Shown here one piece after another: positions 2,486-53,900 of a stretch of DNA of 64,000 bases. This DNA comes from Phyllobates terribilis (taxonomy: Eukaryota), in contig NW_027362767.1 in the NCBI RefSeq assembly GCF_046119375.1, positions 434,248,001 to 434,312,000 of the forward strand. Direction: 5' to 3'. The translations under genes and the position numbers were made by a program. Within the stretch, counting starts at the first letter, position 1, and each line of letters starts with the position of its first letter. The notes beneath the pieces were generated by a model. That model saw only the letters and a program-made list of their open reading frames with translations. It was not told the origin of the DNA and ran no database searches.

Positions 2486-2508
2486 AGGTATATCATCTCT
2501 GTACTCAC

Positions 2509-2555
2509 CTGGTTGTGTTTGTACATCACTGGAAATGTGAAGACCCCGATCACCA
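2509..2555 (-). CDS. RTN2: RTN2 reticulon-domain exon ([16 protein letters not shown])
   Basis: 47 nt, TGTTGCAG acceptor, CAG|GTGAGT donor. Confidence 0.9.
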
Positions 2556-5500: not shown

Positions 5501-8500
5501 ACATACAGCACACTGACACTGCTACAACACACTGACACATACAGGACACTGACACTGCTACATACAACACACTGACACTGCTGCAACACACTGACACTGC
5601 TCCATACAACACACTGACACTGCTCCATACAACACACTGACACTGCTCCATACAACACACTGACACTGTCCCATACAGCCCACTGACACTGTCCCATACA
5701 GCCCACTGACACTGTCCCATACAGCCCACTGACACTGTCCCATACAGCCCACTGACACTGCTACATACAGCACACTGAAACTGCTACATACAGCCCACTG
5801 ACACTGCTACATACAGCCCACTGACACTGCTACATACAGCCCACTGACACTGCTACATACAGCCCACTGACACTGCTACATACAGCACACTGACACTGCT
5901 CCATACAGCCCACTGACACTGCTACATACAACACACTGACACATACAGTACACTGCTACATACAACACACTGACACTGCTACATACAACACTGACACTGC
6001 TCCATACAGCCCACTGATATTGCTACATACAACACACTGACACTGCTACATACAACACACTGACACTGCGCTGCTACATACAGCCCACTGACACTGCTAC
6101 AACACACTGACACATACAGTACACTGACACTGCTATATACAACACACTGACACTGCTGCAACACACTGACACATACAGTACACTGACACTGCTCCATACA
6201 GCCCACTGACACTGCTCCATACAGTTATATGAAAAAGTTTGGGCACCCCTATTAATCTTAAGCTTAATGTTTTATAAAAATTGGTGTTTTTGCAGCAGCT
6301 ATTTCAGTTTGATATATGTAATAACTGTTGGACACAGTAATGTTTCTGCCTTGAAATGAGGTTTATTGTACTAACAGAAAATGTGCAATCTGCATTCAAA
6401 CAAAATTTGACAGGTGCATAAGTATGGGCACCCTTATCATTTTCTTGTTTTAAATACTCCTACCTACTTTTTACTGACTTACTAAAGCATTTTTTTGGTT
6501 TTGTAACCTCATTGAGCTTTGAACTTCATAGCCAGGTGTATGCAATCATGAGAAAAGCTACTTAAAGTGGCCACTTGCAAGTTGTTCTCCTGTTTGAATC
6601 TCCTCTGAAGAGTGGCATCATGGGCTCCTCAAAACAACTGTCAAATGATCAGAAAACAAAGATTATTCAACATAGTGGTTCAGGGGAAGGATACAAAAAG
6701 CTGTCTCAGAGATTTAACCTGTCAGTTTCCACTGTGAGGAACATAGTAAGGAAATGGAAGAACACAGGGACAGTTCTTGTTAAGGCCAGAAGTGGCAGGC
6801 CAAGAAAAACATCAGAAAGGCAGAGAAGAAGAATTGTGGGATCAGTCAAGGACAATCCTCAGACCACCTCCAGAGAGCTGCAGCATCAACTTGCTGCAGA
6901 TGGTGTCACTGTGCATCGGTCAACTATACAACGCACTTTGCACAAGGAGAAGCTGTATGGGAGAGTGATGCGAATGAAGCCGTTTCTGCAAGCACGCCAC
7001 AAACAGAGTCGGCTGAGGTATGCAAAAGCACATTTGGAGAAGCCAATTTCTTTTTGGTAGAAGGTCCTATAGACTGATGAAACCAAGAGTGAGTTGTTTG
7101 GTCATACAAAAAGGCGTTATGCATGGCGGCAAAAAAAAAACAGCATTCCAAGAAAAACACTTGCTACCCACAGTCAAATTTGGTGGAGGTTCCATCATGC
7201 TTTGGGGCTGTGTGGCCAATGCCGGCACCGGGAATCTTGTTAAAGTTGAGGGACGCATTGATTCCACTCAGTATCAGCAGATTCTTGACAATAATGTTCA
7301 AGAATCAGTGATAAAGTTGAAGTTACGCAGGGGATGGATCTTTCAGCAAGACAATGATCCAAAACACCGTTCCAAATCTACTCAGGCATTCATGCAGAGG
7401 AACAATTACAATGTTCTGGAATGGCCATCCCAGTCCCCAGACCTGAATATCATTGAACATCTGTGGGATCATTTGAAGAGGGCTGTCCATGCTCGGCGAC
7501 CATCAAACTTAACTGAACTGGAATTGTTTTGTAAAGAGGAATGGTCAAAAATACCTTCATCCAGGATCCAGGAAATCATTAAAAGCTACAGGAAGCGACT
7601 AGAGGCTGTTATTATCGCAAAAGGAGGATCTACTAAATATTAATGTCACTTTTCTGGTGAGGTGCCCATACTTATGCACCTGTCAAATTTTGTTTGAATG
7701 CAGATTGCACATTTTCTGTTAGTACAATAAACCTCATTTCAAGGCAGAAACATTACTGTGTCCAACAGTTATTACATATATCAAATTGAAATAGCTGCTG
7801 CAAAAACACCAATTTTTATAAAACATTAAGCTTAAGATTAATAGGGGTGCCCAAACATTTTCATATAACTGTGCAACACACTGACACTGCTACATACAGC
7901 CCACTGACACTGCTACATACAGAAAACTGACACTGCTACATACAGAAAACTGACACTGCTACATACACCCCACTGACACTGCTACATACAACACACTGAC
8001 ACTGCTACATACAACACACTGACACTGCTACATACAACACACTGACACTGCTACATACAGCACACTGACACTGCTACATACAGCACACTGACACTGCTAC
8101 ATACAGCACACTGACACTGCTACATACAGCACACTGACACTGCTATATTTCAAGCCGAGCAGCCCCCCACAGTTGTCCGGTGGTCATGTCTCCGCACTCA
8201 CTGGAAGGGATTTATTCCGTCTCCCTTCTTCAGGAGTTTGCAGTAGATCCGTATTATGAATGTTGCACTGAGGACGAGGAGACAGGAGTAGGAGACGATG
8301 CTGATCACACTGAACTGGATGAGGCACAGCAGGCACACAGTGAGACCGGTGAGACAGCTGGCAGAGAGAGCGATGTCTCGCCAGTATAAGAGGTCTGCCA
8401 CTGAGAGAGAGAAAAAGAGAGCGAGGTAAGCGTCAGCACCGGCGCAGAGAGCGAGGTAAGCGTCAGCACCGGCGCAGAGAGCGAGGTAAGCGTCAGCACC

Positions 8501-11500
8501 GGCGCAGAGAGCGAGGTAAGCGTCAGCACCGGCGCAGAGAGCGAGGTAAGCGTCAGCACCGGCGCAGAGAGCGAGGTAAGCGTCAGCACCGGCGCAGAGA
8601 GCGAGGTAAGCGTCAGCACCGGCGCAGAGAGCGAGGTAAGCGTCAGCACCGGCGCAGAGAGCGAGGTAAGCGTCAGCACCGGCGCAGAGAGCGAGGTAAG
8701 CGTCAGCACCGGCGCAGAGAGCGAGGTAAGCGTCAGCACCGGCGCAGAGAGCGAGGTAAGCGTCAGCACCGGCGCAGAGAGCGAGGTAAGCGTCAGCACC
8801 GTCGCAGAGAGCGAGGTAAGCGTCAGCACAGGGGCAGAGAGCGAGGTAAGCGTCAGCACAGGGGCAGAGAGCGAGGTAAGCGTCAGCACAGGGGCAGAGA
8901 GCGAGGTAAGCGTCAGCACAGGGGCAGAGAGCGAGGTAAGCGTCAGCACAGGGGCAGAGAGCGAGGTAAGCGTCAGCACAGGGGCAGAGAGCGAGGTAAG
9001 CGTCAGCACCGGCGCAGAGAGCGAGGTAAGCGTCAGCACAGGGGCAGAGAGCGAGGTAAGCGTCAGCACAGGCGCAGAGAGCGAGGTAAGCGCCAGCATG
9101 GGCATTTGGTCATTACCCACCACTGATCCTCTATAATAAGACTGCGCTTGCGTGGCGCTGTTCGCCCTCTATCATGTGACGCTGGGAGATGACATCGCAG
9201 TGATACTATAGTGGATACATAATCCCGGGGATGTGTGTAATAATTTGTAGTCCAGGAGTTAAACTCTCAGTGATGGGGCCCCATACTACTGTCTTACAGA
9301 GCCGCAGGGCCATCAGGGGCTCAGACCGGGCTTCACCTCCAGCAAGTTGACAGGTAATTGATGATTACATTTGGCCCATCTACTCCAGTTCCGGTCCACG
9401 ACCCTGGGGGGGCCGTCAGCTATAGAGGAGACCAGATTACCCCCTCCTACAGATTCAAAATTAAGTGACCCTCAAAAGATCCTCCCTGCGTTTCCCACTA
9501 AGTGCCCATATTGGGTTACTAGGTGGCAGATGGGAGCTGTGGGGCCCCGACCATTTTACAAGAGGGACCCAGATACTTTAACTGACAGCCATGGCTGTGG
9601 AGGGGCCAGGTGCTGTAGGGGGGCCTCACGCTGACACTGATATTTGTCCCTTTTTGCCCCATTCTCGGCCTCCACCCCTCACGTCTCTGCAGGACTCACC
9701 CGCTTTCCTCATGGTGTCCTCCTGGTAGCTGCTCCGGGTCTGGGGTGACAGGTGGTGAGAGTCTCTACGACCAGCGTCTGTGAGGGAAGAAGAAGACACT
9801 AAATATAGATGGACAGGGACAACCCCCCTGAGACGAGCAACAACCTCTGTCCTGAGAACCCCTCTCTGCGGCCAGAAAAAGCCACGGAGAACAGCTGTCC
9901 ACACCCAGGGTCAGCTGCTGCCCACTCCACGCAGGGCACCCCTCATATGCCAGGAAGACACCGCCTGTAGTGGGCACCTTGTGTCCCGGGGGGGGGGGGA
10001 GTCAGCACTTACATATTATTGAAGGTTTTATCAAAGTAAAGGTAGCAAAGAAGTAAGTGACCCCCAGCCCCTGCAGTGGTGAAGAAGTGAACGACAGAGG
10101 AAGACCCCACAATCACCTCCATTATTCCACCTCCTGACCCAGCTGGGAGAGGTGAGCGCTGCAGCCAGAGATTCCCCTCATTCCCAGAAGCTTTAATACA
10201 AAGCTGCGCGGCTTATAGAGATCAGAGACCGCGGGCGATAAGCTGCAACAATGGAGCGCGAGCCAGGAGAAAGCCATTGTATCTCTCCCCATATGCCAGC
10301 ACTGTGTAGAATAACTGATAACGGGGCAGCAGTGATGTCACTTCCTGTATAACATAACTGATATCACAAGAGCAGTGATGTCATATATAAAATCTGCATC
10401 ATACTCCAGAGCTGCGCTCACTATTCTGGTCTAGTCACTGTATACATACATTACATTACTGATCCTGTACTGATCCTGAGTTACATCCTGTATTATACTC
10501 GAGAGCTGCACTCACTATTCTGCTGCTGCTGTCACTGTGTACATACATTACATTACTGATCCTGAGTTACATCCTGTATTATACTCCAGAGCTGCACTCA
10601 CTATTCTGCTGGTGCAGTCACTGTGTACATACATTACATTACTGATCCTGAGTTACATCCTGTATTATACTCCAGAGCTGCACTCACTATTCTGCTGGTG
10701 CAGTCACTGTGTACATACATTACATTACTGATCCTGTACTGATTCTGAGTTACATCCTGTATTATACTCCAGAGCTGCACTCACTATTCTGCTGGTGCAG
10801 TCACTGAGTACATACATTACATTACTGATCCTGTACTGATCCTGAGTTACATCCTGTATTATACTCCAGAGCTGCACTTACTATTCTGCTTGTGCAGTCA
10901 CTGTGTGCATACATTACATTACTGATCCTGTACTTGATCCTGAGTTACATCCTGTATTATACTCCAGAGCAGCACTCACTATTCTGCTGGTGCAATCACT
11001 GTGTACATACATTACATTACTGATCCTGAGTTACATCCTGTATTATACTCCAGAGCTGCACTCACTATTCTGCTGGTGCAGTCACTGTGTACATACATTA
11101 CATTACTGATCCTGAGTTACATCCTGTATTATACTCCAGAGCTGCACTCACTATTCTGCTGGTGCAGTCACTGTGTACATACATTACATTACTGATCATG
11201 AGTTACCTCCTGTATTATACTCCAGAGCTGCACTCACTATTCTGCTGGTGCAGTCACTGTGTACATACATTACATTACTGATCCTGAGTTACATCCTGTA
11301 TTATACTCCAGAGCTGCACTCACTATTCTGCTGGTGCAGTCACTGTGTACATACATTACATTACTGATCCTGAGTTACATCCTGTATTATACTCCAGAGC
11401 TGCACTCACTATTCTGCTGGTGCAGTCACTGTGTACATACATTACATTACTGATCATGAGTTACCTCCTGTATTATACTCCAGAGCTGCACTCACTATTC

Positions 11501-14500
11501 TGCTGGAGGTTTCACTGTACAGTGTTTCCTTGGTGACATCTAGTACTATGTCTCACCCATTGTGATCCCTGATATTTTCGGCTGGGGTTTCTCCACTAGT
11601 GTCTGTTCCTCATAGTTCCTCGGGGGCAGGGCTTGTGTCACCTGACACGCCTTCTCCAAAAGAACATAGGTCACAGTCTCCTCTTCTGGTTCCTCTTTCC
11701 TTGGTAACTGTGCTCGGCCCAGACCCCGTCCCCTTCGGGCCCTAACTGTGGGACGGGTTAATGGGACTGAACTTCCAATGGTAATGTAAGAGAAGGTTGG
11801 CTCCTGAGGTGAAGGTAAGGGCCACAGATCAGCCAGGGTCACCGTGGCATCATCGAGGTCACCTACAACATAGACAGAAGAGCGGCACTGAGCATGTGGC
11901 GTGATGACCGGGCCTCATTTATCAGTACAGCTGTCATTGTTTCCCATAGCAACCAATCACAGTGCAGCTTTCATTTTACCTGAAAAGTTTAAAAAATGAA
12001 AGCTGAACTGTGATTGGTTGTTATGGGCAACAGAAAAAAATTACTGTTGGGTTTGATCAATGAGGCCCAGTATTGTGTTTACATGGACGAGGGGCCATTC
12101 AGAAGGGGCGGAGCTACAAATCAATCGTGCATGTCATGTGACTAATATAGAGGACACACATACACACGGAGTCTTTACCATCTGGAGGGCAGGAGTCCGG
12201 GGTGCTGGAGGCAGTGGATGGAGCGTCCTCTGCAGGAGAAGCACAGACATTACAGGCACAATTTTGATAATTTTTGGGTAAGTTTTGTTTGAATGCATGA
12301 TTGCATGAATGCACAGCACCACTGCCCCCACATAGTCACCTGCACAGCACCACCGCCTCCACACAGTCACCTGCATAGCACCGCCGCCCCTACACAGTCA
12401 CCTGCACAGCACCAAAGCCTCCACACAGTCACCTGCACAGCACCACCACCTCCACAGTCACCTGCACAGCACCGCCGCCCCCCACACAGTTACCTGCACA
12501 GCACCACCGCCTCCACACAGTCACCTGCACAGCACCACCGCCTCCACACAGTCACCTGCACAGCACCACCGCCTCCACACAGTCACCTGCACAGCACCGC
12601 CGCCTCCACACAGTCACCTGCATAGCACCGCCGCCCCTACACAGTCACCTGCACAGCACCAAAGCCTCCACACAGTCACCTGCACAGCACCACCACCTCC
12701 ACAGTCACCTGCACAGCACCGCCGCCCCCCACACAGTTACCTGCACAGCACCACCGCCTCCACACAGTCACCTGCACAGCACCACCGCCTCCACACAGTC
12801 ACCTGCACAGCACCGCCGCCTCCACACAGTCACCTGCACAGCACCGCCGCCTCCACACAGTCACCTGCACAGCACCGCCGCCTCCACACAGTCACCTGCA
12901 CAGCACCGCCGCCTCCACACAGTCACCTGCACAGCACCACTGCCCCCACATAGTCACCTGCACAGCACCACCGCCTCCACACAGTCACCTGCATAGCACC
13001 GCCGCCCCTACACAGTCACCTGCACAGCACCAAAGCCTCCACACAGTCACCTGCACAGCACCACCACCTCCACAGTCACCTGCACAGCATCGCCGCCCCC
13101 CACACAGTTACCTGCACAGCACCACCGCCTCCACACAGTCACCTGCACAGCACCACCGCCTCCACACAGTCACCTGCACAGCACCACCGCCTCCACACAG
13201 TCACCTGCACAGCACCGCCGCCTCCACACAGTCACCTGCATAGCACCGCCGCCCCTACACAGTCACCTGCACAGCACCAAAGCCTCCACACAGTCACCTG
13301 CACAGCACCACCACCTCCACAGTCACCTGCACAGCACCGCCGCCCCCCACACAGTTACCTGCACAGCACCACCGCCTCCACACAGTCACCTGCACAGCTC
13401 CACCGCCTCCACAGTCACCTGCACAGCACCGCCGCCTCCACACAGTCACCTGCACAGCACCGCCGCCTCCACACAGTCACCTGCACAGCACCGCCGCCTC
13501 CACACAGTCACCTGCACAGCACCGCCGCCCCCCACAGAGTCATCTGCACAGCACCACCGCCTCCACACAGTCACCTGCACAGCACCACCGCCCCCACACA
13601 GTCACCTGCACAGCACCGCCGCCTCCACACAGTCACCTGCACAGCACCGCCGCCTCCACAGTCACCTGCACAGCACCGCCGCCTCCACAGTCACCTGCAC
13701 AGCACCGCTGCCCCCACACAGTCACCTGCACAGCACCACCACCTCCACAGTCACCTGCACAGCACCACTACCTCCACAGTCACCTGCACAGCACCGCCGC
13801 CCCCACACAGTCACCTGCACAGCACCGCCACCTCCACAGTCACCTGCACAGCACCACCGCCTCCACACAGTCACCTGCACAGCACCACCGCCTCCACACA
13901 GTCACCTGCACAGCACCACCGCCCCCACACAGTCACCTGCACAGCACCACCGCCCCCACACAGTCACCTGCACAGCACCACCACCTGCACAGCACCAAAG
14001 CCTCCACACAGTCACCTGCACAGCACCACCACCTCCACCCCCACAGTCACCTGCACAGCACCGCCGCCCCCCCCACAGTCATCTGCACAGCACCGCCGCC
14101 CCCACAGTCACCTGCACAGCACCGCCACCCCCAGACAGTCACCTGCACAGCACCGCCGCCCCCAGACAGTCACCTGCACAGCACCGCCGCCTCCAGTCAC
14201 CTGCACAGCACCACCGCCTCCACAGTCACCTGCACAGCACCAAAGCCTCCACACAGTCACCTGCACAGCACCACCACCTCCACCCCCAGTCACCTGCACA
14301 GCACCGCCGCCCCCCCCACAGTCATCTGCACAGCACCGCCGCCCCCCCCACAGTCATCTGCACAGCACCGCCGCCCCCAGTCACCTGCACAGCACCACCA
14401 CCCCCAGACAGTCACCTGCACAGCACCGCCGCCCCCAGACAGTCACCTGCACAGCACCGCCGCCCCCAGACAGTCACCTGCACAGCACCGCCGCCCCCAG

Positions 14501-17500
14501 ACAGTCACCTGCACAGCACCGCCGCCCCCAGACAGTCACCTGCACAGCACCGCCGCCCCCAGACAGTCACCTGCACAGCACCGCCGCCCCCAGACAGTCA
14601 CCTGCACAGCACCGCCGCCTCCACACAGTCACCTGCACAGCACCGCCGCCTCCACACAGTCACCTGCACAGCACCGCCGCCTCCACAGTCACCTGCACAG
14701 CACCGCCGCCTCCACAGTCACCTGCACAGCACTGCCGCCCCCACACAGTCACCTGCACAGCACCGCCACCCCCACAGTCACCTGCACAGCACCGCCGCCT
14801 CCAGTCACCTGCACAGCACCACCGCCTCCACAGTCACCTGCACAGCACCAAAGCCTCCACACAGTCACCTGCACAGCACCACCACCTCCACCCCCAGTCA
14901 CCTGCACAGCACCGCCGCCCCCCCACAGTCATCTGCACAGCACCGCCGCCCCCCCCACAGTCATCTGCACAGCACCGCCGCCCCCAGTCACCTGCACAGC
15001 ACCACCACCCCCAGACAGTCACCTGCACAGCACCGCCGCCCCCAGACAGTCACCTGCACAGCACCGCCGCCCCCAGACAGTCACCTGCACAGCACCGCCG
15101 CCCCCAGACAGTCACCTGCACAGCACCGCCACCCCCAGACAGTCACCTGCACAGCACCGCCGCCCCCAGACAGTCACCTGCACAGCACCGCCGCCCCCAG
15201 ACAGTCACCTGCACAGCACCGCCGCCTCCACACAGTCACCTGCACAGCACCGCCGCCTCCACACAGTCACCTGCACAGCACCGCCGCCTCCACAGTCACC
15301 TGCACAGCACCGCCGCCTCCACAGTCACCTGCACAGCACCACCGCCTCCACACAGTCACCTGCACAGCACCACCGCCTCCACACAGTCACCTGCACAGCA
15401 CCGCCGCCTCCACACAGTCACCTGCATAGCACCGCCGCCCCTACACAGTCACCTGCACAGCACCAAAGCCTCCACACAGTCACCTGCACAGCACCACCAC
15501 CTCCACAGTCACCTGCACAGCACCGCCGCCCCCCACACAGTTACCTGCACAGCACCACCGCCTCCACACAGTCACCTGCACAGCTCCACCGCCTCCACAG
15601 TCACCTGCACAGCACCGCCGCCTCCACACAGTCACCTGCACAGCACCGCCGCCTCCACACAGTCACCTGCACAGCACCGCCGCCTCCACACAGTCACCTG
15701 CACAGCACCGCCGCCCCCCACAGAGTCATCTGCACAGCACCACCGCCTCCACACAGTCACCTGCACAGCACCACCGCCCCCACACAGTCACCTGCACAGC
15801 ACCGCCGCCTCCACACAGTCACCTGCACAGCACCGCCGCCTCCACAGTCACCTGCACAGCACCGCCGCCTCCACAGTCACCTGCACAGCACCGCTGCCCC
15901 CACACAGTCACCTGCACAGCACCACCACCTCCACAGTCACCTGCACAGCACCACTACCTCCACAGTCACCTGCACAGCACCGCCGCCCCCACACAGTCAC
16001 CTGCACAGCACCGCCACCTCCACAGTCACCTGCACAGCACCACCGCCTCCACACAGTCACCTGCACAGCACCACCGCCTCCACACAGTCACCTGCACAGC
16101 ACCACCGCCCCCACACAGTCACCTGCACAGCACCACCGCCCCCACACAGTCACCTGCACAGCACCACCACCTGCACAGCACCAAAGCCTCCACACAGTCA
16201 CCTGCACAGCACCACCACCTCCACCCCCACAGTCACCTGCACAGCACCGCCGCCCCCCCCACAGTCATCTGCACAGCACCGCCGCCCCCACAGTCACCTG
16301 CACAGCACCGCCACCCCCAGACAGTCACCTGCACAGCACCGCCGCCCCCAGACAGTCACCTGCACAGCACCGCCGCCTCCAGTCACCTGCACAGCACCAC
16401 CGCCTCCACAGTCACCTGCACAGCACCAAAGCCTCCACACAGTCACCTGCACAGCACCACCACCTCCACCCCCAGTCACCTGCACAGCACCGCCGCCCCC
16501 CCCACAGTCATCTGCACAGCACCGCCGCCCCCCCCACAGTCATCTGCACAGCACCGCCGCCCCCAGTCACCTGCACAGCACCACCACCCCCAGACAGTCA
16601 CCTGCACAGCACCGCCGCCCCCAGACAGTCACCTGCACAGCACCGCCGCCCCCAGACAGTCACCTGCACAGCACCGCCGCCCCCAGACAGTCACCTGCAC
16701 AGCACCGCCGCCCCCAGACAGTCACCTGCACAGCACCGCCGCCCCCAGACAGTCACCTGCACAGCACCGCCGCCCCCAGACAGTCACCTGCACAGCACCG
16801 CCGCCTCCACACAGTCACCTGCACAGCACCGCCGCCTCCACACAGTCACCTGCACAGCACCGCCGCCTCCACAGTCACCTGCACAGCACCGCCGCCTCCA
16901 CAGTCACCTGCACAGCACTGCCGCCCCCACACAGTCACCTGCACAGCACCGCCACCCCCACAGTCACCTGCACAGCACCGCCGCCTCCAGTCACCTGCAC
17001 AGCACCACCGCCTCCACAGTCACCTGCACAGCACCAAAGCCTCCACACAGTCACCTGCACAGCACCACCACCTCCACCCCCAGTCACCTGCACAGCACCG
17101 CCGCCCCCCCACAGTCATCTGCACAGCACCGCCGCCCCCCCCACAGTCATCTGCACAGCACCGCCGCCCCCAGTCACCTGCACAGCACCACCACCCCCAG
17201 ACAGTCACCTGCACAGCACCGCCGCCCCCAGACAGTCACCTGCACAGCACCGCCGCCCCCAGACAGTCACCTGCACAGCACCGCCGCCCCCAGACAGTCA
17301 CCTGCACAGCACCGCCACCCCCAGACAGTCACCTGCACAGCACCGCCGCCCCCAGACAGTCACCTGCACAGCACCGCCGCCCCCAGACAGTCACCTGCAC
17401 AGCACCGCCGCCTCCACACAGTCACCTGCACAGCACCGCCGCCTCCACACAGTCACCTGCACAGCACCGCCGCCTCCACAGTCACCTGCACAGCACCGCC

Positions 17501-19289
17501 GCCTCCACAGTCACCTGCACAGCACTGCCGCCCCCACACAGTCACCTGCACAGCACCGCCACCCCCACAGTCACCTGCACAGCACCGCCACCCCCAGACA
17601 GTCACCTGCACAGCACCACCGCCCCCAGACAGTCACCTGCACAGCACCGCCGCCTCCACACAGTCACCTGCACAGCACCACCGCCTCCACAGTCACCTGC
17701 ACAGCACCAAAGCCTCCACACAGTCACCTGCACAGCACCACCACCTCCACCCCCACAGTCACCTGCACAGCACCGCCGCCCCCCCACAGTCATCTGCACA
17801 GCACCACCACGCCCAGACAGTCACCTGCACAGCACCGCCGCCCCCAGACAGTCACCTGCACAGCACCGCCGCCTCCACACAGTCACCTGCACAGCACCGC
17901 CGCCTCCACACAGTCACCTGCACAGCACCGCCGCCTCCACAGTCACCTGCACAGCACCGCCGCCCCCACACAGTCACCTGCACAGCACCGCCACCCCCAC
18001 ACAGTCACCTGCACAGCACCGCCGCCCCCACACAGTCGCCTGCACAGCACCACCATCGCCCCCACACAGTCGCCTGCACAGCACCACCATCGCCCCCAGA
18101 CAGTCACCTGCACAGCACCACCGCCCCCACATAGTCACCTGCACAGCACCGCCGCCCCCACACAGTCACATGCACAACACCACTGCCCCCACACAGCACT
18201 GCCGCCCCTACACAGCAAACACACAGATATATACACACGGCACAGCTAATACACAGATTATATACACACGGCACGTCTAATACACCGATATATACACACG
18301 GCACAGCTAATACACAGATATATACACACGGCACAGCTAATACACAGATATATACACACGGCACAGCTAATACACAGATTATATACACACGGCACAGCTA
18401 ATACACAGATATATACACACGGCACGTCTAATACACAGATATATACACACGGCACAGCCAATACACAGATATATACACACGGCACAGCTAATACACAGAT
18501 ATATACACACGGCACAGCCAATACACAGATATATACACACGGCACAGCTAATACACAGATATATACACACGGCACAGCCAATACACAGATATATACACAC
18601 GGCACAGCCAATACACAGATATATACACACGGCACAGCTAATACACAGATATATACACACGGCACGTCTAATACACAGATATATACACACGTCACGTCTA
18701 ATACACCGATATATACACACGGCACAGCTAATACACAGATATATACACACGGCACAGCTAATACACAGATTATATACACACGGCACAGCTAATACACAGA
18801 TATATACACACGGCACGTCTAATACACAGATATATACACACGGCACAGCCAATACACAGATATATACACACGGCACAGCCAATACACAGATATATACACA
18901 CGGCACAGCCAATACACAGATATATACACACGGCACAGCTAATACACAGATATATACACACGGCACAGCCAATACACAGATATATACACACGGCACAGCC
19001 AATACACAGATATATACACACGGCACAGCTAATACACAGATATATACACACGGCACAGCTTATACAGTCAGAGCACTACTGTAGTAGTGTGACGGCAACA
19101 CACTGACATGTGATGATCTGGGTGACAGTCACACGAGGACGCCGCGCTCCTCGCTCTCTATAGGATACACCCATATGCAGCCCCTACATAACAATGATGG
19201 AGGAGAGCCTGCACCTGCACTCACAGCGAGACACAATGATACAGCAGGCGACACTTACTGCAGTGTGTGAACGACAGGACGTGTCCCAT
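2509..19289 (-). CDS. RTN2: Reticulon-2, partial (last exons lie beyond the window start). Exons: 19289-19259, 12229-12179, 11862-11557, 9777-9700, 8400-8202, 3825-3687, 2809-2740, 2555-2509
   Basis: All introns are GT-AG with consistent phases. N-terminus [23 protein letters not shown] and EPTFSYI match the RTN2-A motifs [20 protein letters not shown] and ELTFSYI. Reticulon domain starts VADLLYW, with typical 139/70/47-nt exons. Syntenic with VASP and OPA3. Confidence 0.93.
2740..2809 (-). CDS. RTN2: RTN2 reticulon-domain exon ([23 protein letters not shown])
   Basis: 70 nt, CCGCAG acceptor, G|GTAAGA donor, conserved NGLTL. Confidence 0.93.
3030..3432. mobile_element. Degenerate T2/Kolobok-like MITE
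   Basis: Imperfect inverted termini AGGGAATCTATCACC / AGAGAATCGCCACC. Left flank TTAG resembles a TTAA target site. Confidence 0.45.
3687..3825 (-). CDS. RTN2: RTN2 reticulon-domain exon (KYLDMD...[15 protein letters not shown])
   Basis: 139 nt, CTCAG acceptor, AAG|GTAAAG donor. Confidence 0.93.
4110..6220. repeat. 23-bp minisatellite (ACAGCCCACTGACACTGCTCCAC), resuming at 7872-8145 after the Tc1 insertion
   Basis: Clear periodicity on both sides of the transposon. Confidence 0.95.
6222..7871 (+). mobile_element. Full-length Tc1/mariner DD34E transposon of IR/DR type, with inactivated transposase (6620-7643)
   Basis: About 211-bp terminal inverted repeats (6222-6432 and 7661-7871) with GGGCACCC direct repeats, TA on the left. 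[18 protein letters not shown] motifs. Two TAG stops near 7060-7072 and a frameshift in an A-run near 7131-7140. Confidence 0.95.
8202..8400 (-). CDS. RTN2: RTN2 reticulon-domain exon (VADLLYWRD...NPFQ)
   Basis: TCTCTCAG acceptor, CA|GTGAGT donor, first hydrophobic hairpin of the reticulon domain. Confidence 0.95.
8418..9095. repeat. 30-bp minisatellite (AGCGAGGTAAGCGTCAGCACCGGCGCAGAG), about 22 copies
   Basis: Near-perfect units abutting the RTN2 exon acceptor. Confidence 0.95.
9700..9777 (-). CDS. RTN2: RTN2 exon 4 (DAGRRDSH...DTMRKA)
   Basis: Strong pyrimidine tract ending CCTCACAG, donor G|GTGAGT, phase 1-1. DTMRKA|VADLL parallels human ADMGSK|VADLL. Confidence 0.75.
10405..11510. repeat. 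86-bp tandem repeat (TACTCCAGAGCTGCACTCACTATTCTGC...)
   Basis: Identical ORFs recur at 86-nt offsets. Related degenerate reverse copies near 37100-37230. Confidence 0.93.
11557..11862 (-). CDS. RTN2: RTN2 exon 3 (includes EPTFSYIT)
   Basis: TGTTGTAG acceptor, G|GTGAGA donor, 306 nt open frame, TFSYI motif. Confidence 0.82.
11943..12027. repeat. Short palindromic dispersed element (AACCAATCACAG..GCAGCTTTCAT), copy 1
   Basis: About 35-bp imperfect inverted arms. Related copies at 40122-40211 and 40390-40465, half-copy near 26242-26268. Confidence 0.7.
12179..12229 (-). CDS. RTN2: RTN2 exon 2 ([17 protein letters not shown])
   Basis: TTCTCCTGCAG acceptor, G|GTAAAG donor, conserved [11 protein letters not shown]. 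Confidence 0.9.
12310..18220. repeat. 29-31-bp C-rich minisatellite (CACAGTCACCTGCACAGCACCGCCGCCTC), about 5.9 kb
   Basis: Clear periodicity plus a 2186-bp higher-order duplication. Confidence 0.95.
18225..19060. repeat. 30-bp minisatellite (GATATATACACACGGCACAGCTAATACACA)
   Basis: Clear periodicity. Confidence 0.95.
19259..19289 (-). CDS. RTN2: RTN2 coding exon 1 ([10 protein letters not shown])
   Basis: ATG at 19289, donor A|GTAAGT, phase 1. Confidence 0.88.
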
Positions 19290-19534
19290 ATCCGCTGTCT
19301 GCCGGTGACACCCATACAGACCCACAAGCGCGCACCCCACAGCGTGTTCTCTCCCTGCCTAGCATCTCATTGTGGAGCAACCTGACACACACAACTCACA
19401 AACACAGGGAGGGGCGAGCGCAGCAGACAAAGGCCTGAGAGGGGGCAGGAAATGACTACTGCACACAGCCATTCATGGACCAACAGCAAAAGAGACAAGG
19501 GACCGCTCCACCCCACAATCCTGTCATCAGATGA

Positions 19535-20210
19535 CTCCACACCGCTATACTACAATCATACGTCTCCACACCGCTATACTACAATCATACGTCTCCACAC
19601 CGCTATACCACAATCATACGTCTCCACACCGCTATACCACAATCATACGTCTCCACACCGCTATACCACAATCATACGTCTCCACACCGCTATACCACAA
19701 TCATACGTCTCCACACCGCTATACCACAATCATACGTCTCCACACCGCTATACCACAATCATACGTCTCCACACCGCTATACTACAATCATACGTCTCCG
19801 CACCGCTATACCGCAATCATACGTCTCCGCACCGCTATACCGCAATCATACGTCTCCGCACCGCTATACCGCAATCATACGTCTCCGCACCGCTATACCG
19901 CAATCATACGTCTCCGCACCGCTATACTGCAATCACGTCTCCACACTGCTATACTGCAATCATACATCTCCACACCGCTATACTACAATCATACATCTCC
20001 ACACCGCTATACTACAATCATACGTCTCCGCACCGCTATACTGCAATCATACGTCTCCGCACCGCTATACTGCAATCACGTCTCCACACTGCTATACTGC
20101 AATCATACATCTCCACACCGCTATACTACAATCATACATCTCCACACCGCTATACTACAATCATAGATCTCCACACCGTTATACTACAATCATAGATCTC
20201 CACACCATTA
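19535..20210. repeat. 29-bp minisatellite (CTCCACACCGCTATACCACAATCATACGT)
   Basis: Clear periodicity, between the RTN2 and SLC3-like 5' ends. Confidence 0.93.
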
Positions 20211-21166
20211 TGGATCTATACTATGCAGTGTTGACGGCCTGTGTGTAGCACCATATACTGCTCTGTACTGTGTGCGGCACTATCCTCCTATATTACCTCT
20301 GTAATATGGCATCCGATGTAGCAGCCATTATTTCTGCGGTTTCCCCATAGTCGTGGTCGCCGTGTTACTGGTGTGAATACGACTTGTGGATATGAACCCA
20401 CGTTGTGACATAAAGTGGCCACAGCCTGCCCAAACATACAATGCATATTTATGCGATCTCCATGTGCGGATGTGTTCACATGTGGTGGTTTTATCACCAT
20501 GATCACAAAGCAGCTTTCCAATGATTTTACCCAAAAAAAAACAAAACATGAAATCACAAGAAAATTAGTAATAAATCATGAAGACCAGATCCAGTGCGAC
20601 GAGGATGATGAGGGTGATTTTGAATAACTTTGCGCCCCTTTGATCAGGATCCGTCAGACCGTGGTGACTATGAAACGGATGGTGAGCTGACATGATTACC
20701 ACACGTCTCCATGGAAACCACAGGAATCCATTATGTAGAGCCTCCCCCGCCCAGTCCAGGTGATCAACACCGCAGCTTCACCTGAGCCCACATTTAACCC
20801 TCGCTGCGCCCTGGATGTCGGGATCATGACCTCTGCGTGTCAGGAGGTGACAGTGGTCAGTGAAGACTGGAAAACTGCTCAACTAGCCATTACCCAATGA
20901 GGCGGCCACCATTTTTGTTTATATGTGGTTTAGCAGGTCTGACTGCTCCGGTACCTGGTTTTGTAGATTGTGTGTATAATTTTGTGTTTTTTGTTTGTAC
21001 CGTGATTGTGCAGACGGTGGTCGGTTGCCCGGACCCCGTTGTCTCCTCGGGTGGGGCGACGATGGTGGATGTAGAATGTGACACTCCTCTTCACACCTGG
21101 CAGTGATTTTCTGGTCAGCAAATACCGAAGTATAAGATCTGCAGGAGGAGACGCCGCCGGGGAGAC

Positions 21167-21377
21167 ATGGAGTCCCAACCGCTCCTCCGGCCTGAGCAGG
21201 ACACCCGCTTCTGGGTGTGTGTACGTCGGGGGCTGCTGGTCCTTTTCTGGATATTACTTGCTGCACTCCTTATTTCTGCCATCATCATTCTCTCCGAGGC
21301 GTATGTGCCGCCTCCACCAAGCGCGTGGCACCAACGTCGAGTGATCTGCCGCATCGCAGGACTGACGCCGCAGACCG
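21167..21377 (+). CDS. SLC3-like exon 1: short cytoplasmic tail and transmembrane helix
   Basis: Kozak GACATGG, hydrophobic segment at about L23-L42, donor G|GTGAGT. Confidence 0.85.
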
Positions 21378-24300
21378 GTGAGTTATATGTGGGGGGGCCC
21401 CCACCCCAACTGCCATGGCGGATGTATCCAAATGGCAGAGGGAATGGCCGTGATGTTAGGTTTGTGATTCTCTCTGGGTGACTTGAAACTACAACTACCA
21501 GCATGAGGAGAAGAGCGTGCGTTACGTGGGGGCGCCGTGCCACACGTCCTCTCTATACATCTCTTGCCCCCCATGTCTTACAGATGTGACACACAGAATA
21601 CGAGAGGCGTCGGCCCTGGGATGTGGGGGTCTCGTCCTCACCCAGGAGGAGGTGACTAACGGGAGTGTGAGAGGTCAGATGAGTGAGGGGCAGAGATACG
21701 GTAAGTGGCTGTCGTGGTCTGAATGGCCGCGCTGAGTAACGAGTTTGAGTCCTGATCACCTCTGTGGGCTTCACGTTCCCAGGTGTCCGCATCATCCTGG
21801 AGGTCCAGATACTGGAGGAATACGACGGCCGTCAAGTCCAGAGACTGAAGGTGATGATGTCATAGTCTATGGGAGATATTTATACATGAGATTGTGAGGA
21901 GAGATGTAAGATTCTATTCACACTCGTTTTTGTTTTTTTTTGGAAACTGGAAAATCCACAACACAAAATCTGTGTGTGTGAACATCGCCCTAAAATTAAT
22001 TCCCATGCCAAGTATGTTTTTTGTGCTCAACAAAATACAGCATTTTACAGTTCCAATAATGTATGGGATTTATAGAAATCTCCTGCCTGCTGGGCCTTTT
22101 TTTTTTTTTTGCATGTCTAACATTTATTTCCCTATGCGAATGTTCCCCATAAACTTGAATGAGGTGGGGTGGGGGTGGGGGTGGGGGGTTGTACATGTAA
22201 TCTGCATATGACTTTATCCATAAAGTTTTATCACCGCTAAGTAACGGGGAAGTTTCCAGCATGAAGCCGTTTTATTTACAGCCTGACCACAAGGAGGAGA
22301 AAAAAAAAAAAAAATGTGATTTTTGTCAACACAATTAACCTAATTTTTGTAATTGGTGCAGAAAATCTTCAGCATCGAAAAACTCATTGTGGGAACTCGG
22401 CCAAAAGCTTTGCACCAGAGGGTAATGGTCTGCAGGCTCCACATTGCTGGGGAGTCGCCTGTAGAGCGGCGCTGTAGTCTATGATCTAACAGCTCAGCGT
22501 CAGGCAGCTGCTCGCCACTCTCATTAGGGGCTCAGGTGCAGAAATCTCCAGGACTTCTATACACTTCTTCTAGACCACCGCTCCATTCAGACAGGAAACC
22601 CGGACCGCCCCATTCTTGTGATCAATGGGGGTCCCAGCGGTGTAACCCTCTCCTCCCCACTATCCTGTTGTGATTGTGTCACAAACCCTGGACTTGTGGG
22701 ACCGGGATGTAATATTAGCACTTTATAACGGAGTGGGGAATGTACAAAGAATAATCAAACTGAGGAAGCGGCTGGAGACGAGATAATCGGGGAATTACAT
22801 GGATTTAGCGTTAAGAAGAGGCGTCTGAGGAGAGAAGACCAACCTGAGCCAGTATAGAAATGACCCATACAATAAATACGGTGAAAATCTGGCTGCTAAG
22901 TAGACAAGAGCGCCCCCTCCTGTTGGAAGAATGAAGGTTCTGTTTCCAGAAATGAACAGGATTCTTTACTGTAAGAGCAGACAAGCTGTGGAGAAAGGGG
23001 AGGACAGGATTGTTCATTGATTGACTCTGGTGTGGATGTAAAGCCCTTCATTCCTTCAGTAGGAGGGGGGCGCTCTTCTATCTCACACATTCCCACCCCA
23101 GTTTCTCAATTAGCCATCTTGTCCTTGCTCCACAGCTTGTCTGCTCTTACAGTAAAGAATCCTGTTCATTTCTTCAGTAGCAGCTCTTGCGTGTTAGTGT
23201 TCAGTAATGATCAGTCGTCTTTACTGAAGCTGTAGGTGGGTAACATATTGAAAGAAGGAGAGGAGTCTCAAAGAAACTGACAATGTGTAGAACAGGTTCA
23301 GTCTGCCAAGATGGGCAGGCTTTTTTACTGTAAGAGCGGTAACTCTAAGGCTATTTATTACTACCTCAGCAGTTATTAAAGGGGGCTGGGGGGTGGGGTT
23401 GTCATCGGCTGCAAATTTCACTGCCCCCTCCAGTGGCCCACCCACACAAACTCCAGGGCTGTATCCCCTCATTTTTAGTAACTTGAGCCCATCTTGTGCA
23501 GGACTCTGCCCGGAGCTGGATGGAAGATGGAGCATCTGGGTTCCAGCTTTTAGGTGACAAGAAAACAACTGTAATGATGGTGAGAGGGGAAATGAGGTGC
23601 TGTCAGCACTGGTACCTGGGGGCGGGGCTGACAATCTCTGTGATGACATCAACAGGGGGTGGGGCTGACAAGCTCTGTGATGTCATCACCAGGGGGGCAG
23701 GGCTGTGACTGTCTGATCTGATGTCAATCACTCTATGATCCTTGTTCGGGGGACAGTTTGGATACTTGTGCTATAGTCAGTGACTACGATACGTCTTGAT
23801 TTTTGGCAGATATCTCAGATCCTCCTGAATGAAGTAGAAATCGCCAGCGGGGAGGAAAGGTGACAACCGAGTAATCACACAGTGACGTATCCTCACAAAA
23901 GAAAATGCTCTAACAAAACTCTATAATTAGGCTAATCCTGCTTCCTAATTGGCTGTGTGACGACGAGGATACATCCAAAAATAAGTCCCAACTTCTGCGC
24001 ACCTGTCCTCTGCCCGACTGGAACCTGCAAAAGTTCCCTACGGGGTCAGAAATGAAGGACATGGCCTGGGAGGTGAGTGGTCGACAGCGGGAGAGGGGAA
24101 GGGCACTTCATAAAGTAACCTCTTATTTTCTGCAGGTGACGTCTGATGACATTGATTCTCTGGAGTTGAGACAGTTCCTGGCTGTAACCCTACCCGGAAC
24201 CGTCATACTGTCCCTGAACCAGGTGTGTCACCCCGGGGTCACATAATGCAGCAAAAGGGTCCGCTCACCTGATAAGGGTAACACATACTGAGAAATGTAT

Positions 24301-25176
24301 CACACATGGCTGAGAAAGCGTATCATAGCAGGTACAACACTGTCACTGTACATAGGGGTAGTATTATAGTAGTTATATTCTTATACATATGGGCAGTATT
24401 ATAGTAGTTATATTCTTGTACATAGGGGCAGTATTATAGTAGTTATATTCTTGTACATAGGGGGCAGTATTATAGCAGTTATATTCTTGTACATAGGGGG
24501 CAGTATTATAGCAGTTATATTCTTGTACATAGGAGCAGTATTATAGTAGTTATATTCTTGTACATAGGGGGCAGTATTATAGCAGTTATATTCTTGTACA
24601 TAGGGGGCAGTATTATAGCAGTTATATTCTTGTACATAGTGGCAGTATTATAGCAGTTATATTCTTGTACATAGGGGGCAGTATTATAGTAGTTATATTC
24701 TTGTACATAGGGGGCAGTATTATAGTAGTTATATTCTTGTACATAGGGGGCAGTATTATAATATACACTGATTAGGTATTTTTGCATACTGATGACTTTC
24801 TGAGGATCTGTCTGTTCCCATCCCCCAGTTGATGTCTTTATCCTCGTTGTCTCCACAGTCCGTCTCGCCGCCCTTCTGGCTCCGCTCTCTTCTCCACCTG
24901 CGATACCAGAACCCCGCGCTCTACACTGGTCGGCTGCAGCTTTTATCTAATGGCTCCTCTTACAGCGCTTTATCCTCCTGGGCCTGTTCCACGCTTCTAG
25001 TCCTTATTGGTCATTCTGATCAATCGCACAACGTGTCACTGCATTTTCCCAATTTCTCAAATGCTGTTCGATTATTGTTGAGTACCAAACTGGAGCGCAA
25101 CAGAGGTCAGCTGCTCCAGGACAGCGTTCAGCTGGTGCCAGGTGAAGCTCAGCTCATCCGCCTCATACCAGAATGA
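21167..25176 (+). CDS. Divergent SLC3-family heavy-chain-like (4F2hc/rBAT-like) type II membrane glycoprotein, about 353 aa. Exons: 21167-21377, 21584-21700, 21783-21850, 23502-23570 (or 23579), 23810-23859, 23931-24072, 24136-24222, 24859-25176
   Basis: Eight exons with canonical splice sites join into one open frame. FWVCVRRGLLVLFW plus a transmembrane segment resembles 4F2hc WVRTRWALLLLFW. Other matches: ALGCGGLVL vs SLKVKGLVL, GVRIILEV vs SIRVILDL, SWMEDGASGFQL vs FWLQAGVDGFQV, QFLAVTLPGTVI vs QLMLFTLPGTPV, LLLSTKLER vs LLLSTQPGR. Comparison is from memory of human SLC3A2. Confidence 0.85.
21584..21700 (+). CDS. SLC3-like exon 2 (DVTHRIREASALGCGGLVL...QRY)
   Basis: TCTTACAG acceptor, G|GTAAGT donor, phase 1-1. 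Confidence 0.85.
21783..21850 (+). CDS. SLC3-like exon 3 (GVRIILEV...QRLK)
   Basis: TTCCCAG acceptor, AAG|GTGATG donor, GH13 beta-3-like motif. Confidence 0.82.
22705..22915 (+). mobile_element. Degenerate CR1-like LINE 3' fragment
   Basis: Piecewise translation DVILALY...VQRIIKL and LHGFSVKKRRLRRE resembles the CR1 ORF2 C-terminal LFSLEKRRLRGD. Confidence 0.4.
22948..23173. repeat. Perfect 46-bp inverted repeat with 134-nt spacer (MITE-like)
   Basis: 22948-22993 is the exact reverse complement of 23128-23173. Confidence 0.85.
23502..23570 (+). CDS. SLC3-like exon 4 (DSARSWMEDGASGFQLLGDKKTT)
   Basis: TTGTGCAG acceptor. 69 nt, the same length I recall for the 4F2hc DALEFW exon. An alternative in-frame donor ATG|GTGAGA follows 23579. 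Confidence 0.78.
23810..23859 (+). CDS. SLC3-like exon 5 (ISQILLNEVEIASGEER)
   Basis: TTTTGGCAG acceptor, AG|GTGACA donor, phase 0-2. Confidence 0.72.
23931..24072 (+). CDS. SLC3-like exon 6 (RLILLPNW...DMAWE)
   Basis: ATTAG acceptor, GAG|GTGAGT donor, phase 2-0. R|LIL parallels 4F2hc R|LLI. Confidence 0.78.
24136..24222 (+). CDS. SLC3-like exon 7 (VTSDD...TLPGTVILSLNQ)
   Basis: TTTTCTGCAG acceptor, CAG|GTGTGT donor, TLPGT motif. Confidence 0.85.
24345..24760. repeat. About 36-bp minisatellite (GTACATAGGGGGCAGTATTATAGTAGTTATATTCTT)
   Basis: Clear periodicity in the last intron of the SLC3-like gene. Confidence 0.93.
24859..25176 (+). CDS. SLC3-like terminal exon (C-domain, 105 aa plus stop)
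   Basis: CTCCACAG acceptor, TGA at 25174-25176, ATTAAA at 25215-25220. Confidence 0.85.
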   Translation, partial: SVSPPFWLRSLLHLRYQNPALYTGRLQLLSNGSSYSALSSWACSTLLVLIGHSDQSHNVSLHFPNFSNAVRLLLSTKLERNRGQLLQDSVQLVPGEAQLIRLIPE

Positions 25177-25429
25177 AACTTTTTTTTTTTTTTTTTTTTT
25201 GTATTTTTAACTTTATTAAATAATTTTTGTGATATGTAACGGGCAAGTTGTCTGTATTTCTGATATCACCAATTGGTTTCAGAAGACTGCGTCTGTCCTG
25301 AGATCCGCAGGTCTCTTGTTTATCTTTATTGTGCTCCCCGTTCTCTGGAGTCTGTCATTTGTAAGCGCAGTTCACACAACAAGCCCCCAGGGGTCACTTT
25401 AGAGTGTCGCAGACCAGTATCCAGACACC

Positions 25430-25740
25430 TACTGCCTACCCCCCCCCCACCCCTTATATACAGCATCCTGACACCTACTTACCTCCTCCCCCTTTATATA
25501 CAGCATCCCGACACCTACTTACCTCCTCCCCCTTTATATACAGCATCCTGACACCTACTTGCCTCCTCTCCCTTTTATATACAGCATCCCGACACCTACT
25601 TACCTCCTCCCCCTTTATATACAGCATCCTGACACCTACTTACCTCCACCCCTCCTTTTATATACAGCATCCTGACACCTACTTACCTCCTCTCCCTTTT
25701 ATATACAGCATCCTGACACCTACTTACCTCCTCCCTTAGT
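25430..25740. repeat. About 40-bp minisatellite (ATACAGCATCCTGACACCTACTTACCTCCTCCCCTTTAT)
   Basis: 7-8 imperfect copies. Confidence 0.88.
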
Positions 25741-26599
25741 GCAGTCTGTCTAGACTGCAGTAATCTCTTCCCATAGACAGTGATGATCTCCCTATGATTC
25801 ATGCTCCTGCGGCCTGTGAAAGCTCCAGCATGGCGGGAGCTCGGCTGCTTTACCTGGGGCAAAAGGAGTAATGTTCTGCCCTAAAGCTTTATCCAACAAC
25901 CTCTACCCAGGCGGCACAATGGCTTGTTAGCCTCCCCTCCCCTGACACGGCACCTGGGGTAAATGCCCCTTATCCCCAGCTACCCCTTTGCTTCACAGTG
26001 ATCCCTGGTCAGGGGCTAAATCAGTAATGGCTGATGACGTCATTACATCAGTGATGTCATCACCAGGGGGTGGGGCTGACAAGCTCTCAGTGATGTCATC
26101 ACAAGGGGGCGGGGCTGACAACCCCTCACACATGTATACAGGCTGGTTGTCAGCAGTGATGGATGAGGAGCTGGTGCTGGAGTATAAGGGGCTGGGGCTG
26201 TGTCCCTTGTCTTTTGAGAATCTATTTTGGGCAGATTAATGAAATGAAAGCTGCGCTGTGATTGGTCGGTGACTGAACAGTTGTTATAAATATTTCCCCT
26301 GTAGATTCAGACTTTATATAGAGAATATGGTGGCGGCTCCCGCGGTCACCTGCCAGGTGTGATCTCCCCTCCCTCCACACTGTAAACCCCCCGGGGGCTG
26401 CAGCAAATGCTGTGGGGGAAGGTGCATGTGGCGTTGCTGCTTTAAGTGGTGGGGCTGTGGCTTGTGGCCGCTTTAAGAGAAGGCAGATCCCAAAAGAGAG
26501 GAAGTGATAGCTTGTAACAGAGAGGAAAGAAAGAGGCAGAAAGAGACCGAGAAAGAAAGGGAGAGAGAAAGAAGGAAAGAAAGACAAAAAAGAGGGCTC

Positions 26600-26828
26600 T
26601 AGAGAGACGGCTGCGTCTATAGCTCTGCTGTACACGGGCGGAGGCTGATGAGCAGAGCCGGGCTGAGCACATAGGCGCCGGGCAGGGAGGCTCTCAGGGG
26701 CCCCGGGAGGAGGCAGCTGGTGCAGGGGCCACTTCCTGCTATGCCCAGATAGCTGAGGGGCACAGGAGAGTTAGGGTGGGGGCAGCACAGGTGAGGACAC
26801 ATTCCTACCAGGAGGCGGCGCCAGCAGC

Positions 26829-26833
<5 letters not shown>
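26600..26833 (+). promoter_or_regulatory. GC/CpG-rich VASP promoter and 5' UTR region
   Basis: CpG-rich stretch just upstream of the ATG, preceded by a GA-rich purine tract at about 26515-26600. Confidence 0.5.
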
Positions 26834-47524
<20,691 letters not shown>

Positions 47525-48642: not shown

Positions 48643-48953
48643 TCACTTTGCCACCTGCTGCCTCTCTGCGGCTCGGGCGCGGGCATCCAGCTCGTCTGTA
48701 AGGAGACCCAGTCGTGCAATCTCCACCTCCATGGAGCTCAGTCTGGCCTCCATCTCTTCCTCTTTCCGGCGAGAGTTGGTGGCCTGCCGCGAGTATTCTG
48801 CTACCATGCAAGCGCCTCCGATTAAAAAGATGGTGGCTTCCCCTAGAAGCTCCGCTCCCAAGTCTGCTGCCGCCTCCTCGTTCATTGGTTTAATGGCGGC
48901 TCCGCGGAAACCCATGATCCTCATCTTAGCTCGCATCTCCACCCAATGGTACA
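48643..48953 (-). CDS. OPA3: OPA3 exon 2
   Basis: TTTGCAG acceptor, TGA at 48645-48643. Confidence 0.95.
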
Positions 48954-53632: not shown

Positions 53633-53900
53633 CTTTAGTGACGTCACATGCCGAAGTCGCGCCTACTGTCCGTCTACCTTTACGTCTCTTCCGTGTTAGG
53701 CCCCGCCTCTTATTACTTTATCCAATCAGTGAGAAGAGCGGGAAACACAGATGGCTGGACACGTGACTCCAGTCTGAGGCGCTGTAGTGACAGTCTGCTG
53801 AGGCGGCAGAGAGGTGACTGAGGCGGCGGGTACAGGGGTGCGGCCTGCCAGTGACTGTCTTGTATTCTGTGATCGCAGGTTAAAAGAAAATGTAAAAAAT
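53633..53900 (-). promoter_or_regulatory. CpG-rich OPA3 promoter region
   Basis: CpG-rich. TGACGTCA (CRE) near 53639, GC-box GCCCCGCC near 53700 and CCAAT near 53722. Confidence 0.5.

Follow-up and report, generated by a model that had tools for sequence, protein, structure and literature searches.

An SLC3A2-related gene between RTN2 and VASP in frogs and its possible origin in the early vertebrate genome duplications

INTRODUCTION

The window analyzed here is a stretch of 64,000 nucleotides of Phyllobates terribilis (assembly GCF_046119375.1, contig NW_027362767.1, positions 434,248,001 to 434,312,000), and its main subject is a gene related to the SLC3 heavy chains of amino acid transporters, which we call SLC3L, located between RTN2 and VASP. 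To our knowledge, work on heteromeric amino acid transporters has recognized no more than two heavy chains since the 1990s, rBAT (SLC3A1) and 4F2hc (SLC3A2, also CD98hc), and no description of a third SLC3 paralogue was found in the literature searched. Public annotations hold SLC3L only as an uncharacterized locus. A previous reading of the window, made from sequence alone, proposed that the gene sits in the slot taken by PPM1N in human, that an ancestral RTN-PPM1-SLC3 block had been duplicated, and that this lineage kept the SLC3 copy while mammals kept PPM1N.

RESULTS

SLC3L is an expressed gene with eight coding exons

Pfam matches on stop-free segments of the window, which contains no runs of N, gave the gene order RTN2 (minus strand), SLC3L (plus), VASP (plus), and OPA3 (minus). 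Together with a comparison of the EVH1 exon, they confirm the order given by the sequence-only reading. RTN2 and SLC3L are arranged head to head. SLC3L falls inside the span proposed earlier (19289-26833), with a 5′ untranslated exon that ends at 20855 and a coding sequence from 21167 to 25176. The 356 codons (1068 nt) are spread over 8 exons, and the seven introns that separate these are GT-AG throughout. The parts of SLC3L are as follows:

At least 20774-20855, plus strand, 5′ untranslated exon (spliced contig of run X10; joint 20855/21014, GT..AG)
21014-21377, plus strand, exon 1, with the ATG at 21167 (joint 21377/21584 in three runs; SLC3A2_N, 30.7 bits)
21107-21478, plus strand, segment with the SLC3A2_N domain (Pfam, 30.7 bits; gathering cut-off 27)
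21584-21700, plus strand, coding exon 2
21783-21850, plus strand, coding exon 3
23502-23579, plus strand, coding exon 4
23810-23859, plus strand, coding exon 5
23931-24072, plus strand, coding exon 6
24136-24222, plus strand, coding exon 7 (joint 24072/24136; donor read in the sequence)
24859-25173, plus strand, coding exon 8, C-terminal beta domain, with the stop at 25174-25176 (acceptor and stop read in the sequence)

Coding exons 2 to 6 were each defined by GT..AG joints, a frame check, and tblastn to orthologues. Seven GT..AG joints are present in spliced contigs from runs X10, X11, and X12, which belong to two studies. The contigs come from four public runs made on the same organism. They were placed on 20210-24346 only, and the placement ended before a tandem array of 36-bp units at 24347-24760. 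Support for the last intron is partial and consists of a 17-base loose end of an X10 contig after 24222, equal to the start of exon 8, and of the orthologues; exon 8 is 85% identical to residues 252-356 of the Ranitomeya protein. The intron at 24073-24135, between exons 6 and 7 (intron 7 in our numbering), is 63 nt long, in frame, and stop-free within the open frame 23914-24243, and its retention would add 21 residues and leave the protein unbroken; the retained form is absent from the placed contigs.

The ratio of nonsynonymous to synonymous substitution rates (dN/dS) against Ranitomeya, calculated exon by exon on whole codons only, was 0.32 with a dS of 0.205, which indicates constraint, of a kind that is not tight. 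A decaying pseudogene or an annotation artifact without function could explain why most Pfam ectodomain models fail to recognize SLC3L and why the annotation of other frogs offers only "uncharacterized protein," but we rejected this reading as extremely improbable, given the intact 356-codon frame with canonical splice sites, the spliced transcripts from two studies, the dN/dS value, and a protein length and five cysteines that are conserved from Ascaphus to neobatrachians. SLC3L is a real, expressed, and functional gene.

Part of the 5′ untranslated region, 21038-21166, is conserved with Dendrobates and Eleutherodactylus, where the NCBI models (464 and 461 amino acids) treat it as an extension of the N terminus. 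The window has an in-frame TGA at 21104-21106 that closes this extension, and past a shared DVECDTP stretch, the Eleutherodactylus coqui extension fits another reading frame of the window. These observations point to a conserved element of untranslated or regulatory nature, not to a coding one.

SLC3L groups with 4F2hc

Searches were made with single exons, and database orthologues (~84% identical) served as proxies for the full protein. Exon 1, which codes for an ExxxLL motif, the transmembrane helix, and a cysteine-free neck, matched SLC3A2_N (PF16028) as noted above, and so did Engystomops P0025 (30.5 bits). Since single-exon phmmer searches of PDB gave marginal matches to 4F2hc, a profile of orthologues was needed; built from 15 of them, it matched human 4F2hc with an E-value of 2.6e-15 (59 bits) over the transmembrane region, the first half of the barrel (domain A), and the C-domain, and rBAT with 11.7 bits (E 0.8-1.1). 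The AlphaFold2 model, with a mean predicted local distance difference test score (pLDDT) of 65, a well-predicted barrel, and a poorly predicted C-domain, shows a single long helix at residues 9-45 and eight beta/alpha units. Chains of 4F2hc were the top Foldseek matches (~1e-8, 17-20% identity), and the nearest clusters in a feature search of the ESM Atlas were SLC3A2 (score 0.96); VIA-align gave Z scores of 17-18 for GH13 enzymes and CD98hc alike. SLC3L groups with 4F2hc/SLC3A2 and not with rBAT/SLC3A1.

Pfam and the model helix agree on a type II single-pass topology with an SLC3A2_N transmembrane region. The ectodomain is GH13-like and homologous to that of 4F2hc, with a triosephosphate isomerase (TIM) barrel A and a C-terminal beta domain; the barrel is shortened, and no match to the Pfam Alpha-amylase family (PF00128) was found in SLC3L. 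The neck has no cysteine that could form a disulfide with a light chain of the SLC7 family: no Cys lies between the membrane and W[HY]QR in the window protein or in any of the 10 full-length orthologues. In the hidden Markov model alignment, the linking Cys of human 4F2hc falls on the AYxPPP of the SLC3L neck, which reads AYxPPP...W[HY]QR. The N-terminal tail starts with ME[ST]xP[LI]L, a conserved ExxxLL-type sorting motif, and the five cysteines mentioned above are invariant among the orthologues. SLC3L is therefore without a feature that defines classical heavy chains, the linking cysteine.

Compared with the known heavy chains, SLC3L shares with 4F2hc the type II single-pass architecture, a transmembrane region of the SLC3A2_N type, GH13-like A and C domains that have no catalytic function, and N-glycosylation sequons, and 4F2hc is its best match by profile, fold, and language model. 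The two proteins differ in length (356 amino acids against ~530, that is, ~170 residues fewer, ~110 of those in the ectodomain), in sequence (17-20% identity), in the neck cysteine, in the very short cytosolic tail with ExxxLL of SLC3L, and in the chromosomal block where their genes lie. With rBAT, SLC3L shares superfamily and topology, whereas rBAT, with ~685 amino acids, has kept its domain B as well as glucosidase motifs that are nearly complete.

Orthologues are found across frogs at the same position

Orthologues were found in 15 other anuran species, namely Ranitomeya variabilis, R. imitator, Dendrobates, Anomaloglossus, Eleutherodactylus, Dendropsophus, Hyla, Pseudophryne, Mixophyes, Engystomops, Leptodactylus, Hyperolius, Staurois, Rhinophrynus, and Ascaphus. 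Over most of its exons, the window gene shares ~83-86% identity with the proteins of Ranitomeya and Dendrobates, which marks the source as a dendrobatoid frog, and the 356-amino-acid orthologues share the exon set. Database names are "uncharacterized" or "hypothetical," except for one E. coqui isoform that NCBI calls "SLC3A2-like."

An exhaustive phmmer search with the last exon against 1.84 billion representatives returned seven true matches, all of them from frogs; a match to a clam sushi-repeat protein was a false positive. Further frogs were added by word searches with the profile and by cluster look-ups. The word searches scored only the 8000 candidates that shared most words, and missed known members such as those of Hyperolius and Mixophyes, even members that stood in the query alignment. 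Protein searches are weak at the divergence of SLC3L, since identity between the Ascaphus and dendrobatid proteins is already only 45-47%. A search limited to residues 10-100 of the Pseudophryne protein, which hold a 7-residue word shared with mammalian 4F2hc, returned frog SLC3L only. Xenopus, Bufo, and Rana, all of them well studied, gave no match in the last-exon phmmer or profile word searches; these genera may have lost SLC3L, may carry it without annotation, or may have a version that is too diverged.

Two of the orthologous loci have peculiarities of their own. In Ascaphus truei, a second copy of the last exon is found ~1 kb past the gene end (L003:22265-22597), with 70% protein identity to residues 297-401; it could stem from duplication of the terminal exon or be what is left of a tandem copy. 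In Rhinophrynus dorsalis (L002), only the last three coding exons could be detected within a 10-kb upstream flank and the annotated product is 138 amino acids long, so the gene may be truncated or its 5′ exons may be further off.

The surroundings of SLC3L in the species with readable flanks are as follows:

Ranitomeya (L001): Reticulon (minus), SLC3L (plus), and WH1/VASP_tetra (plus) within 25 kb
E. coqui (L005): Reticulon (minus), SLC3L (plus), and a plus-strand gene downstream with the VASP EVH1 exon
Dendropsophus (L006): Reticulon (minus), SLC3L (plus), and a downstream plus-strand gene of 387 amino acids, a VASP-like length
Ascaphus (L003): Reticulon (minus) 2 kb upstream of SLC3L
Hyperolius (L007): Reticulon (minus) upstream of SLC3L
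Mixophyes (L008): VASP EVH1 exon downstream of SLC3L

In all six, SLC3L adjoins RTN2 and/or VASP. Collinearity between the window and the Ranitomeya locus extends to the tandem arrays. Ascaphus is the sister of all other living frogs. The RTN2-SLC3L-VASP position is older than crown Anura, and SLC3L is not a recent, lineage-specific transposed duplicate, which the sequence-only reading had named as the outcome that would speak against its proposal.

PPM1N is absent from the frog slot

The human order FOSB-RTN2-PPM1N-VASP-OPA3-GPR4-EML2 is documented, in agreement with the earlier account of 19q13.32, so that mammalian PPM1N holds the same place between RTN2 and VASP as SLC3L does (PMC4015772). 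PPM1N differs in being a PP2C phosphatase, a protein family unrelated to SLC3L. Pfam detected no PF00481 match at E<=1 in any of 150 stop-to-stop segments (at least 40 amino acids, both strands, tandem arrays left out) from 2453-12335 and 19088-31037, and the remainder of the spacer between RTN2 and SLC3L, 12310-19066 and 19535-20206, is minisatellite. Four signature motifs characteristic of PP2C in the PPM family were found in none of the six frames of the whole window or of eight frog loci, and no PP2C gene was called at the SLC3L locus in the six species with readable flanks. With both scans negative, the claim that no PP2C-family exons lie between RTN2 and VASP stands, and PPM1N is absent from the frog RTN2-VASP slot, a result that concerns this slot only. 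In mammals, PPM1N lies on the plus strand, head to head with RTN2, as SLC3L does. Literature searches on PPM1 ohnologues (copies derived from the vertebrate genome duplications) and on PPM1N in Xenopus found nothing relevant.

Neighboring genes and repeats

The genes that flank SLC3L in the window were assigned from the following features:

2453-3884, minus strand, RTN2 reticulon-homology-domain exons, inside segments 2453-2923 and 3495-3884 (partial matches to Pfam Reticulon, PF02453)
11549-11914, minus strand, RTN2 N-terminal coding exon (tblastn, 92.7% identity to L001:2679-3005 within the Ranitomeya Reticulon gene)
26217-27048, plus strand, 5′ VASP region (blastn against L001:15331-16077; the annotated Ranitomeya VASP starts at L001:15885)
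31369-31773 and 40492-40806, plus strand, VASP EVH1/WH1 coding exons (Pfam WH1)
41277-41612, plus strand, proline-rich VASP coding exon, within the VASP coding span 31369-46655
46365-46655, plus strand, VASP tetramerization exon (Pfam VASP_tetra)
48646-49035, minus strand, OPA3 exon 2 (Pfam OPA3, PF07047)
53444-53662, minus strand, OPA3 exon 1 (Pfam OPA3; the OPA3 exons gave 81 and 48 bits)

The EVH1 exon found human VASP as its best match in PDB (97.5 bits), ahead of ENAH (76.7) and EVL (74.8), and collinearity with Ranitomeya puts the first VASP exon near 26.8 kb, ~1.6 kb downstream of the SLC3L stop. A Reticulon gene is annotated at the corresponding place of the collinear Ranitomeya locus, and counterparts of the N-terminal exon were also found in Dendropsophus and Ascaphus. 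The reticulon gene of the window is RTN2 by position, because OPA3 is nearby.

The window is rich in minisatellites, and Tandem Repeats Finder arrays occupy most of the intergenic space between RTN2 and SLC3L:

12310-18196, minisatellite array
18211-19066, minisatellite array
19535-20206, minisatellite array

Several arrays, among them those at 18211-19066, 19535-20206, and 27922-30712, align with arrays at matching positions in Ranitomeya variabilis, and such shared arrays are old and positionally stable, not recent expansions; the largest array, 12592-18215, showed no alignment to Ranitomeya. Remnants of Tc1/mariner-type transposases lie at 6566-7640 (plus), 34471-35226 (minus), and 57689-58808 (plus), and the VASP intron of Ranitomeya holds an inverted counterpart (L001:19085-20253) with 85% identity to the Tc1/mariner copy at 57512-58691.

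DISCUSSION

SLC3L encodes a 356-amino-acid type II membrane glycoprotein with a short cytosolic ExxxLL tail and one SLC3A2_N-type transmembrane helix, followed outside by a neck that is rich in proline and lacks the cysteine for the light chain, and by a reduced GH13-like ectodomain made up of a (beta/alpha)8 barrel and a C-terminal beta domain. It appears to be a deep-branching relative of 4F2hc/SLC3A2, and it has stood head to head with RTN2, with VASP just downstream, from a time before the living frogs last shared an ancestor. Its likely role is that of an ancillary or trafficking subunit that associates non-covalently, perhaps in endosomes or lysosomes, and not that of a classical disulfide-linked heavy chain; in other words, SLC3L may be a non-covalent or differently targeted subunit.

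Regarding its origin, we lean with restrained confidence toward SLC3L being a third SLC3 copy that survived from the two rounds of vertebrate genome duplication (2R). In a block like 19q13.32, it would match the SLC3A2 gene of the 11q12-13 block; frogs would have kept it, and elsewhere it would be lost or changed beyond recognition. The order RTN2, SLC3L, VASP, OPA3 of the window corresponds, with SLC3L in place of PPM1N, to that of human 19q13.32 (PMC4015772). A third SLC3 gene in such a block fits the expected look of a surviving ohnologue, and the similarity to SLC3A2, far above that to SLC3A1, would fit a later split from SLC3A2. In human, the RTN, FOS, EML, and PPM1 families form a tetrad over 2p, 11q12-13, 14q, and 19q13.3, with SLC3A1 on 2p21 and SLC3A2 on 11q12.3.

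The slot argument itself had its source in the human rBAT gene, which adjoins a PPM1 gene, PPM1B. This neighborhood, asserted in the sequence-only reading, is on record, as SLC3A1, PREPL, and PPM1B are contiguous at 2p21 (PMC8607452). As a refinement, SLC3L is SLC3A2-like and far closer to 4F2hc than to rBAT, so its paralogy is to be sought in the 11q12-13 block more than in the PPM1B-SLC3A1 pair.

Several points weigh against an ohnologue. No relative outside Anura was found in the last-exon phmmer search (1.84 billion representatives) or in the profile word searches (E<=10), and because of this, an ohnologue origin needs many independent losses or orthologues too diverged for detection. A duplication on the frog stem followed by fast evolution would yield equal distances. 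Finally, reciprocal loss is unproven because the absence of PPM1N covers the RTN2-VASP slot only. The proposal of an ohnologue with reciprocal loss is thus upheld in part: the position in a 19q13.32-like block, the affinity to SLC3A2, the age of the gene, and the absence of PPM1N from the slot speak for it, and the lack of any relative outside frogs speaks against it. The full claim of reciprocal loss with PPM1N is less probable than the ohnologue origin as such.

The detection of relatives in anurans only would be explained directly if SLC3A2 had been duplicated at the DNA level on the frog stem, after the salamander split and before crown Anura, and the copy had landed between RTN2 and VASP, with PPM1N displaced or lost independently. 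Such a copy would have lost ~110 ectodomain residues and the neck cysteine and evolved very fast before coming under moderate constraint, and it would agree with the SLC3A2-type rather than rBAT-type character of SLC3L, with the relaxed constraint (dN/dS of 0.32), and with the high rate seen between Ascaphus and dendrobatids. However, a dispersed multi-exon copy must then have hit by chance a paralogous block, in the exact place and orientation of an ohnologue; an early burst of change must be assumed to reach 17-20% identity to human 4F2hc; and the copy is not a retrocopy, an origin that we rejected on the basis of the eight coding exons. We regard this course of events as rather unlikely, though deserving of serious weight.

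The very low identity to 4F2hc would also be expected of an old paralogue that owes nothing to 2R, either from a split among 4F2hc-like genes before vertebrates or from duplication on a small scale in an early bony vertebrate or tetrapod, with a secondary placement in the 19q-like block. Invertebrates have 4F2hc-like heavy chains, and the family is older than vertebrates. Nevertheless, this origin leaves the match in position and paralogous block without explanation, and no match was obtained in non-frog proteomes; we consider it improbable.

If SLC3L is indeed an ohnologue, it would resemble other ohnologues retained in frogs and lost in mammals, as examples of differential retention after the vertebrate duplications, although those are usually also found in fishes or reptiles and SLC3L has so far been found in anurans only. 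A bolder proposition, which we put forward tentatively and hold to be somewhat doubtful, is that SLC3L is a third vertebrate heavy chain, "SLC3A3," that dates from 2R more than 450 million years ago, survives only in frogs, needs no disulfide, and is routed by ExxxLL to endosomes or lysosomes. If this were true, it would mean a new heavy-chain mode and a clean reciprocal loss of ohnologues with PPM1N.

In conclusion, the conserved and expressed SLC3L gene of frogs presents the 4F2hc ectodomain in a naturally minimal form. It may also indicate a new partner or cellular compartment, and it provides a test case for the lineage-specific sorting of copies from the early vertebrate genome duplications.

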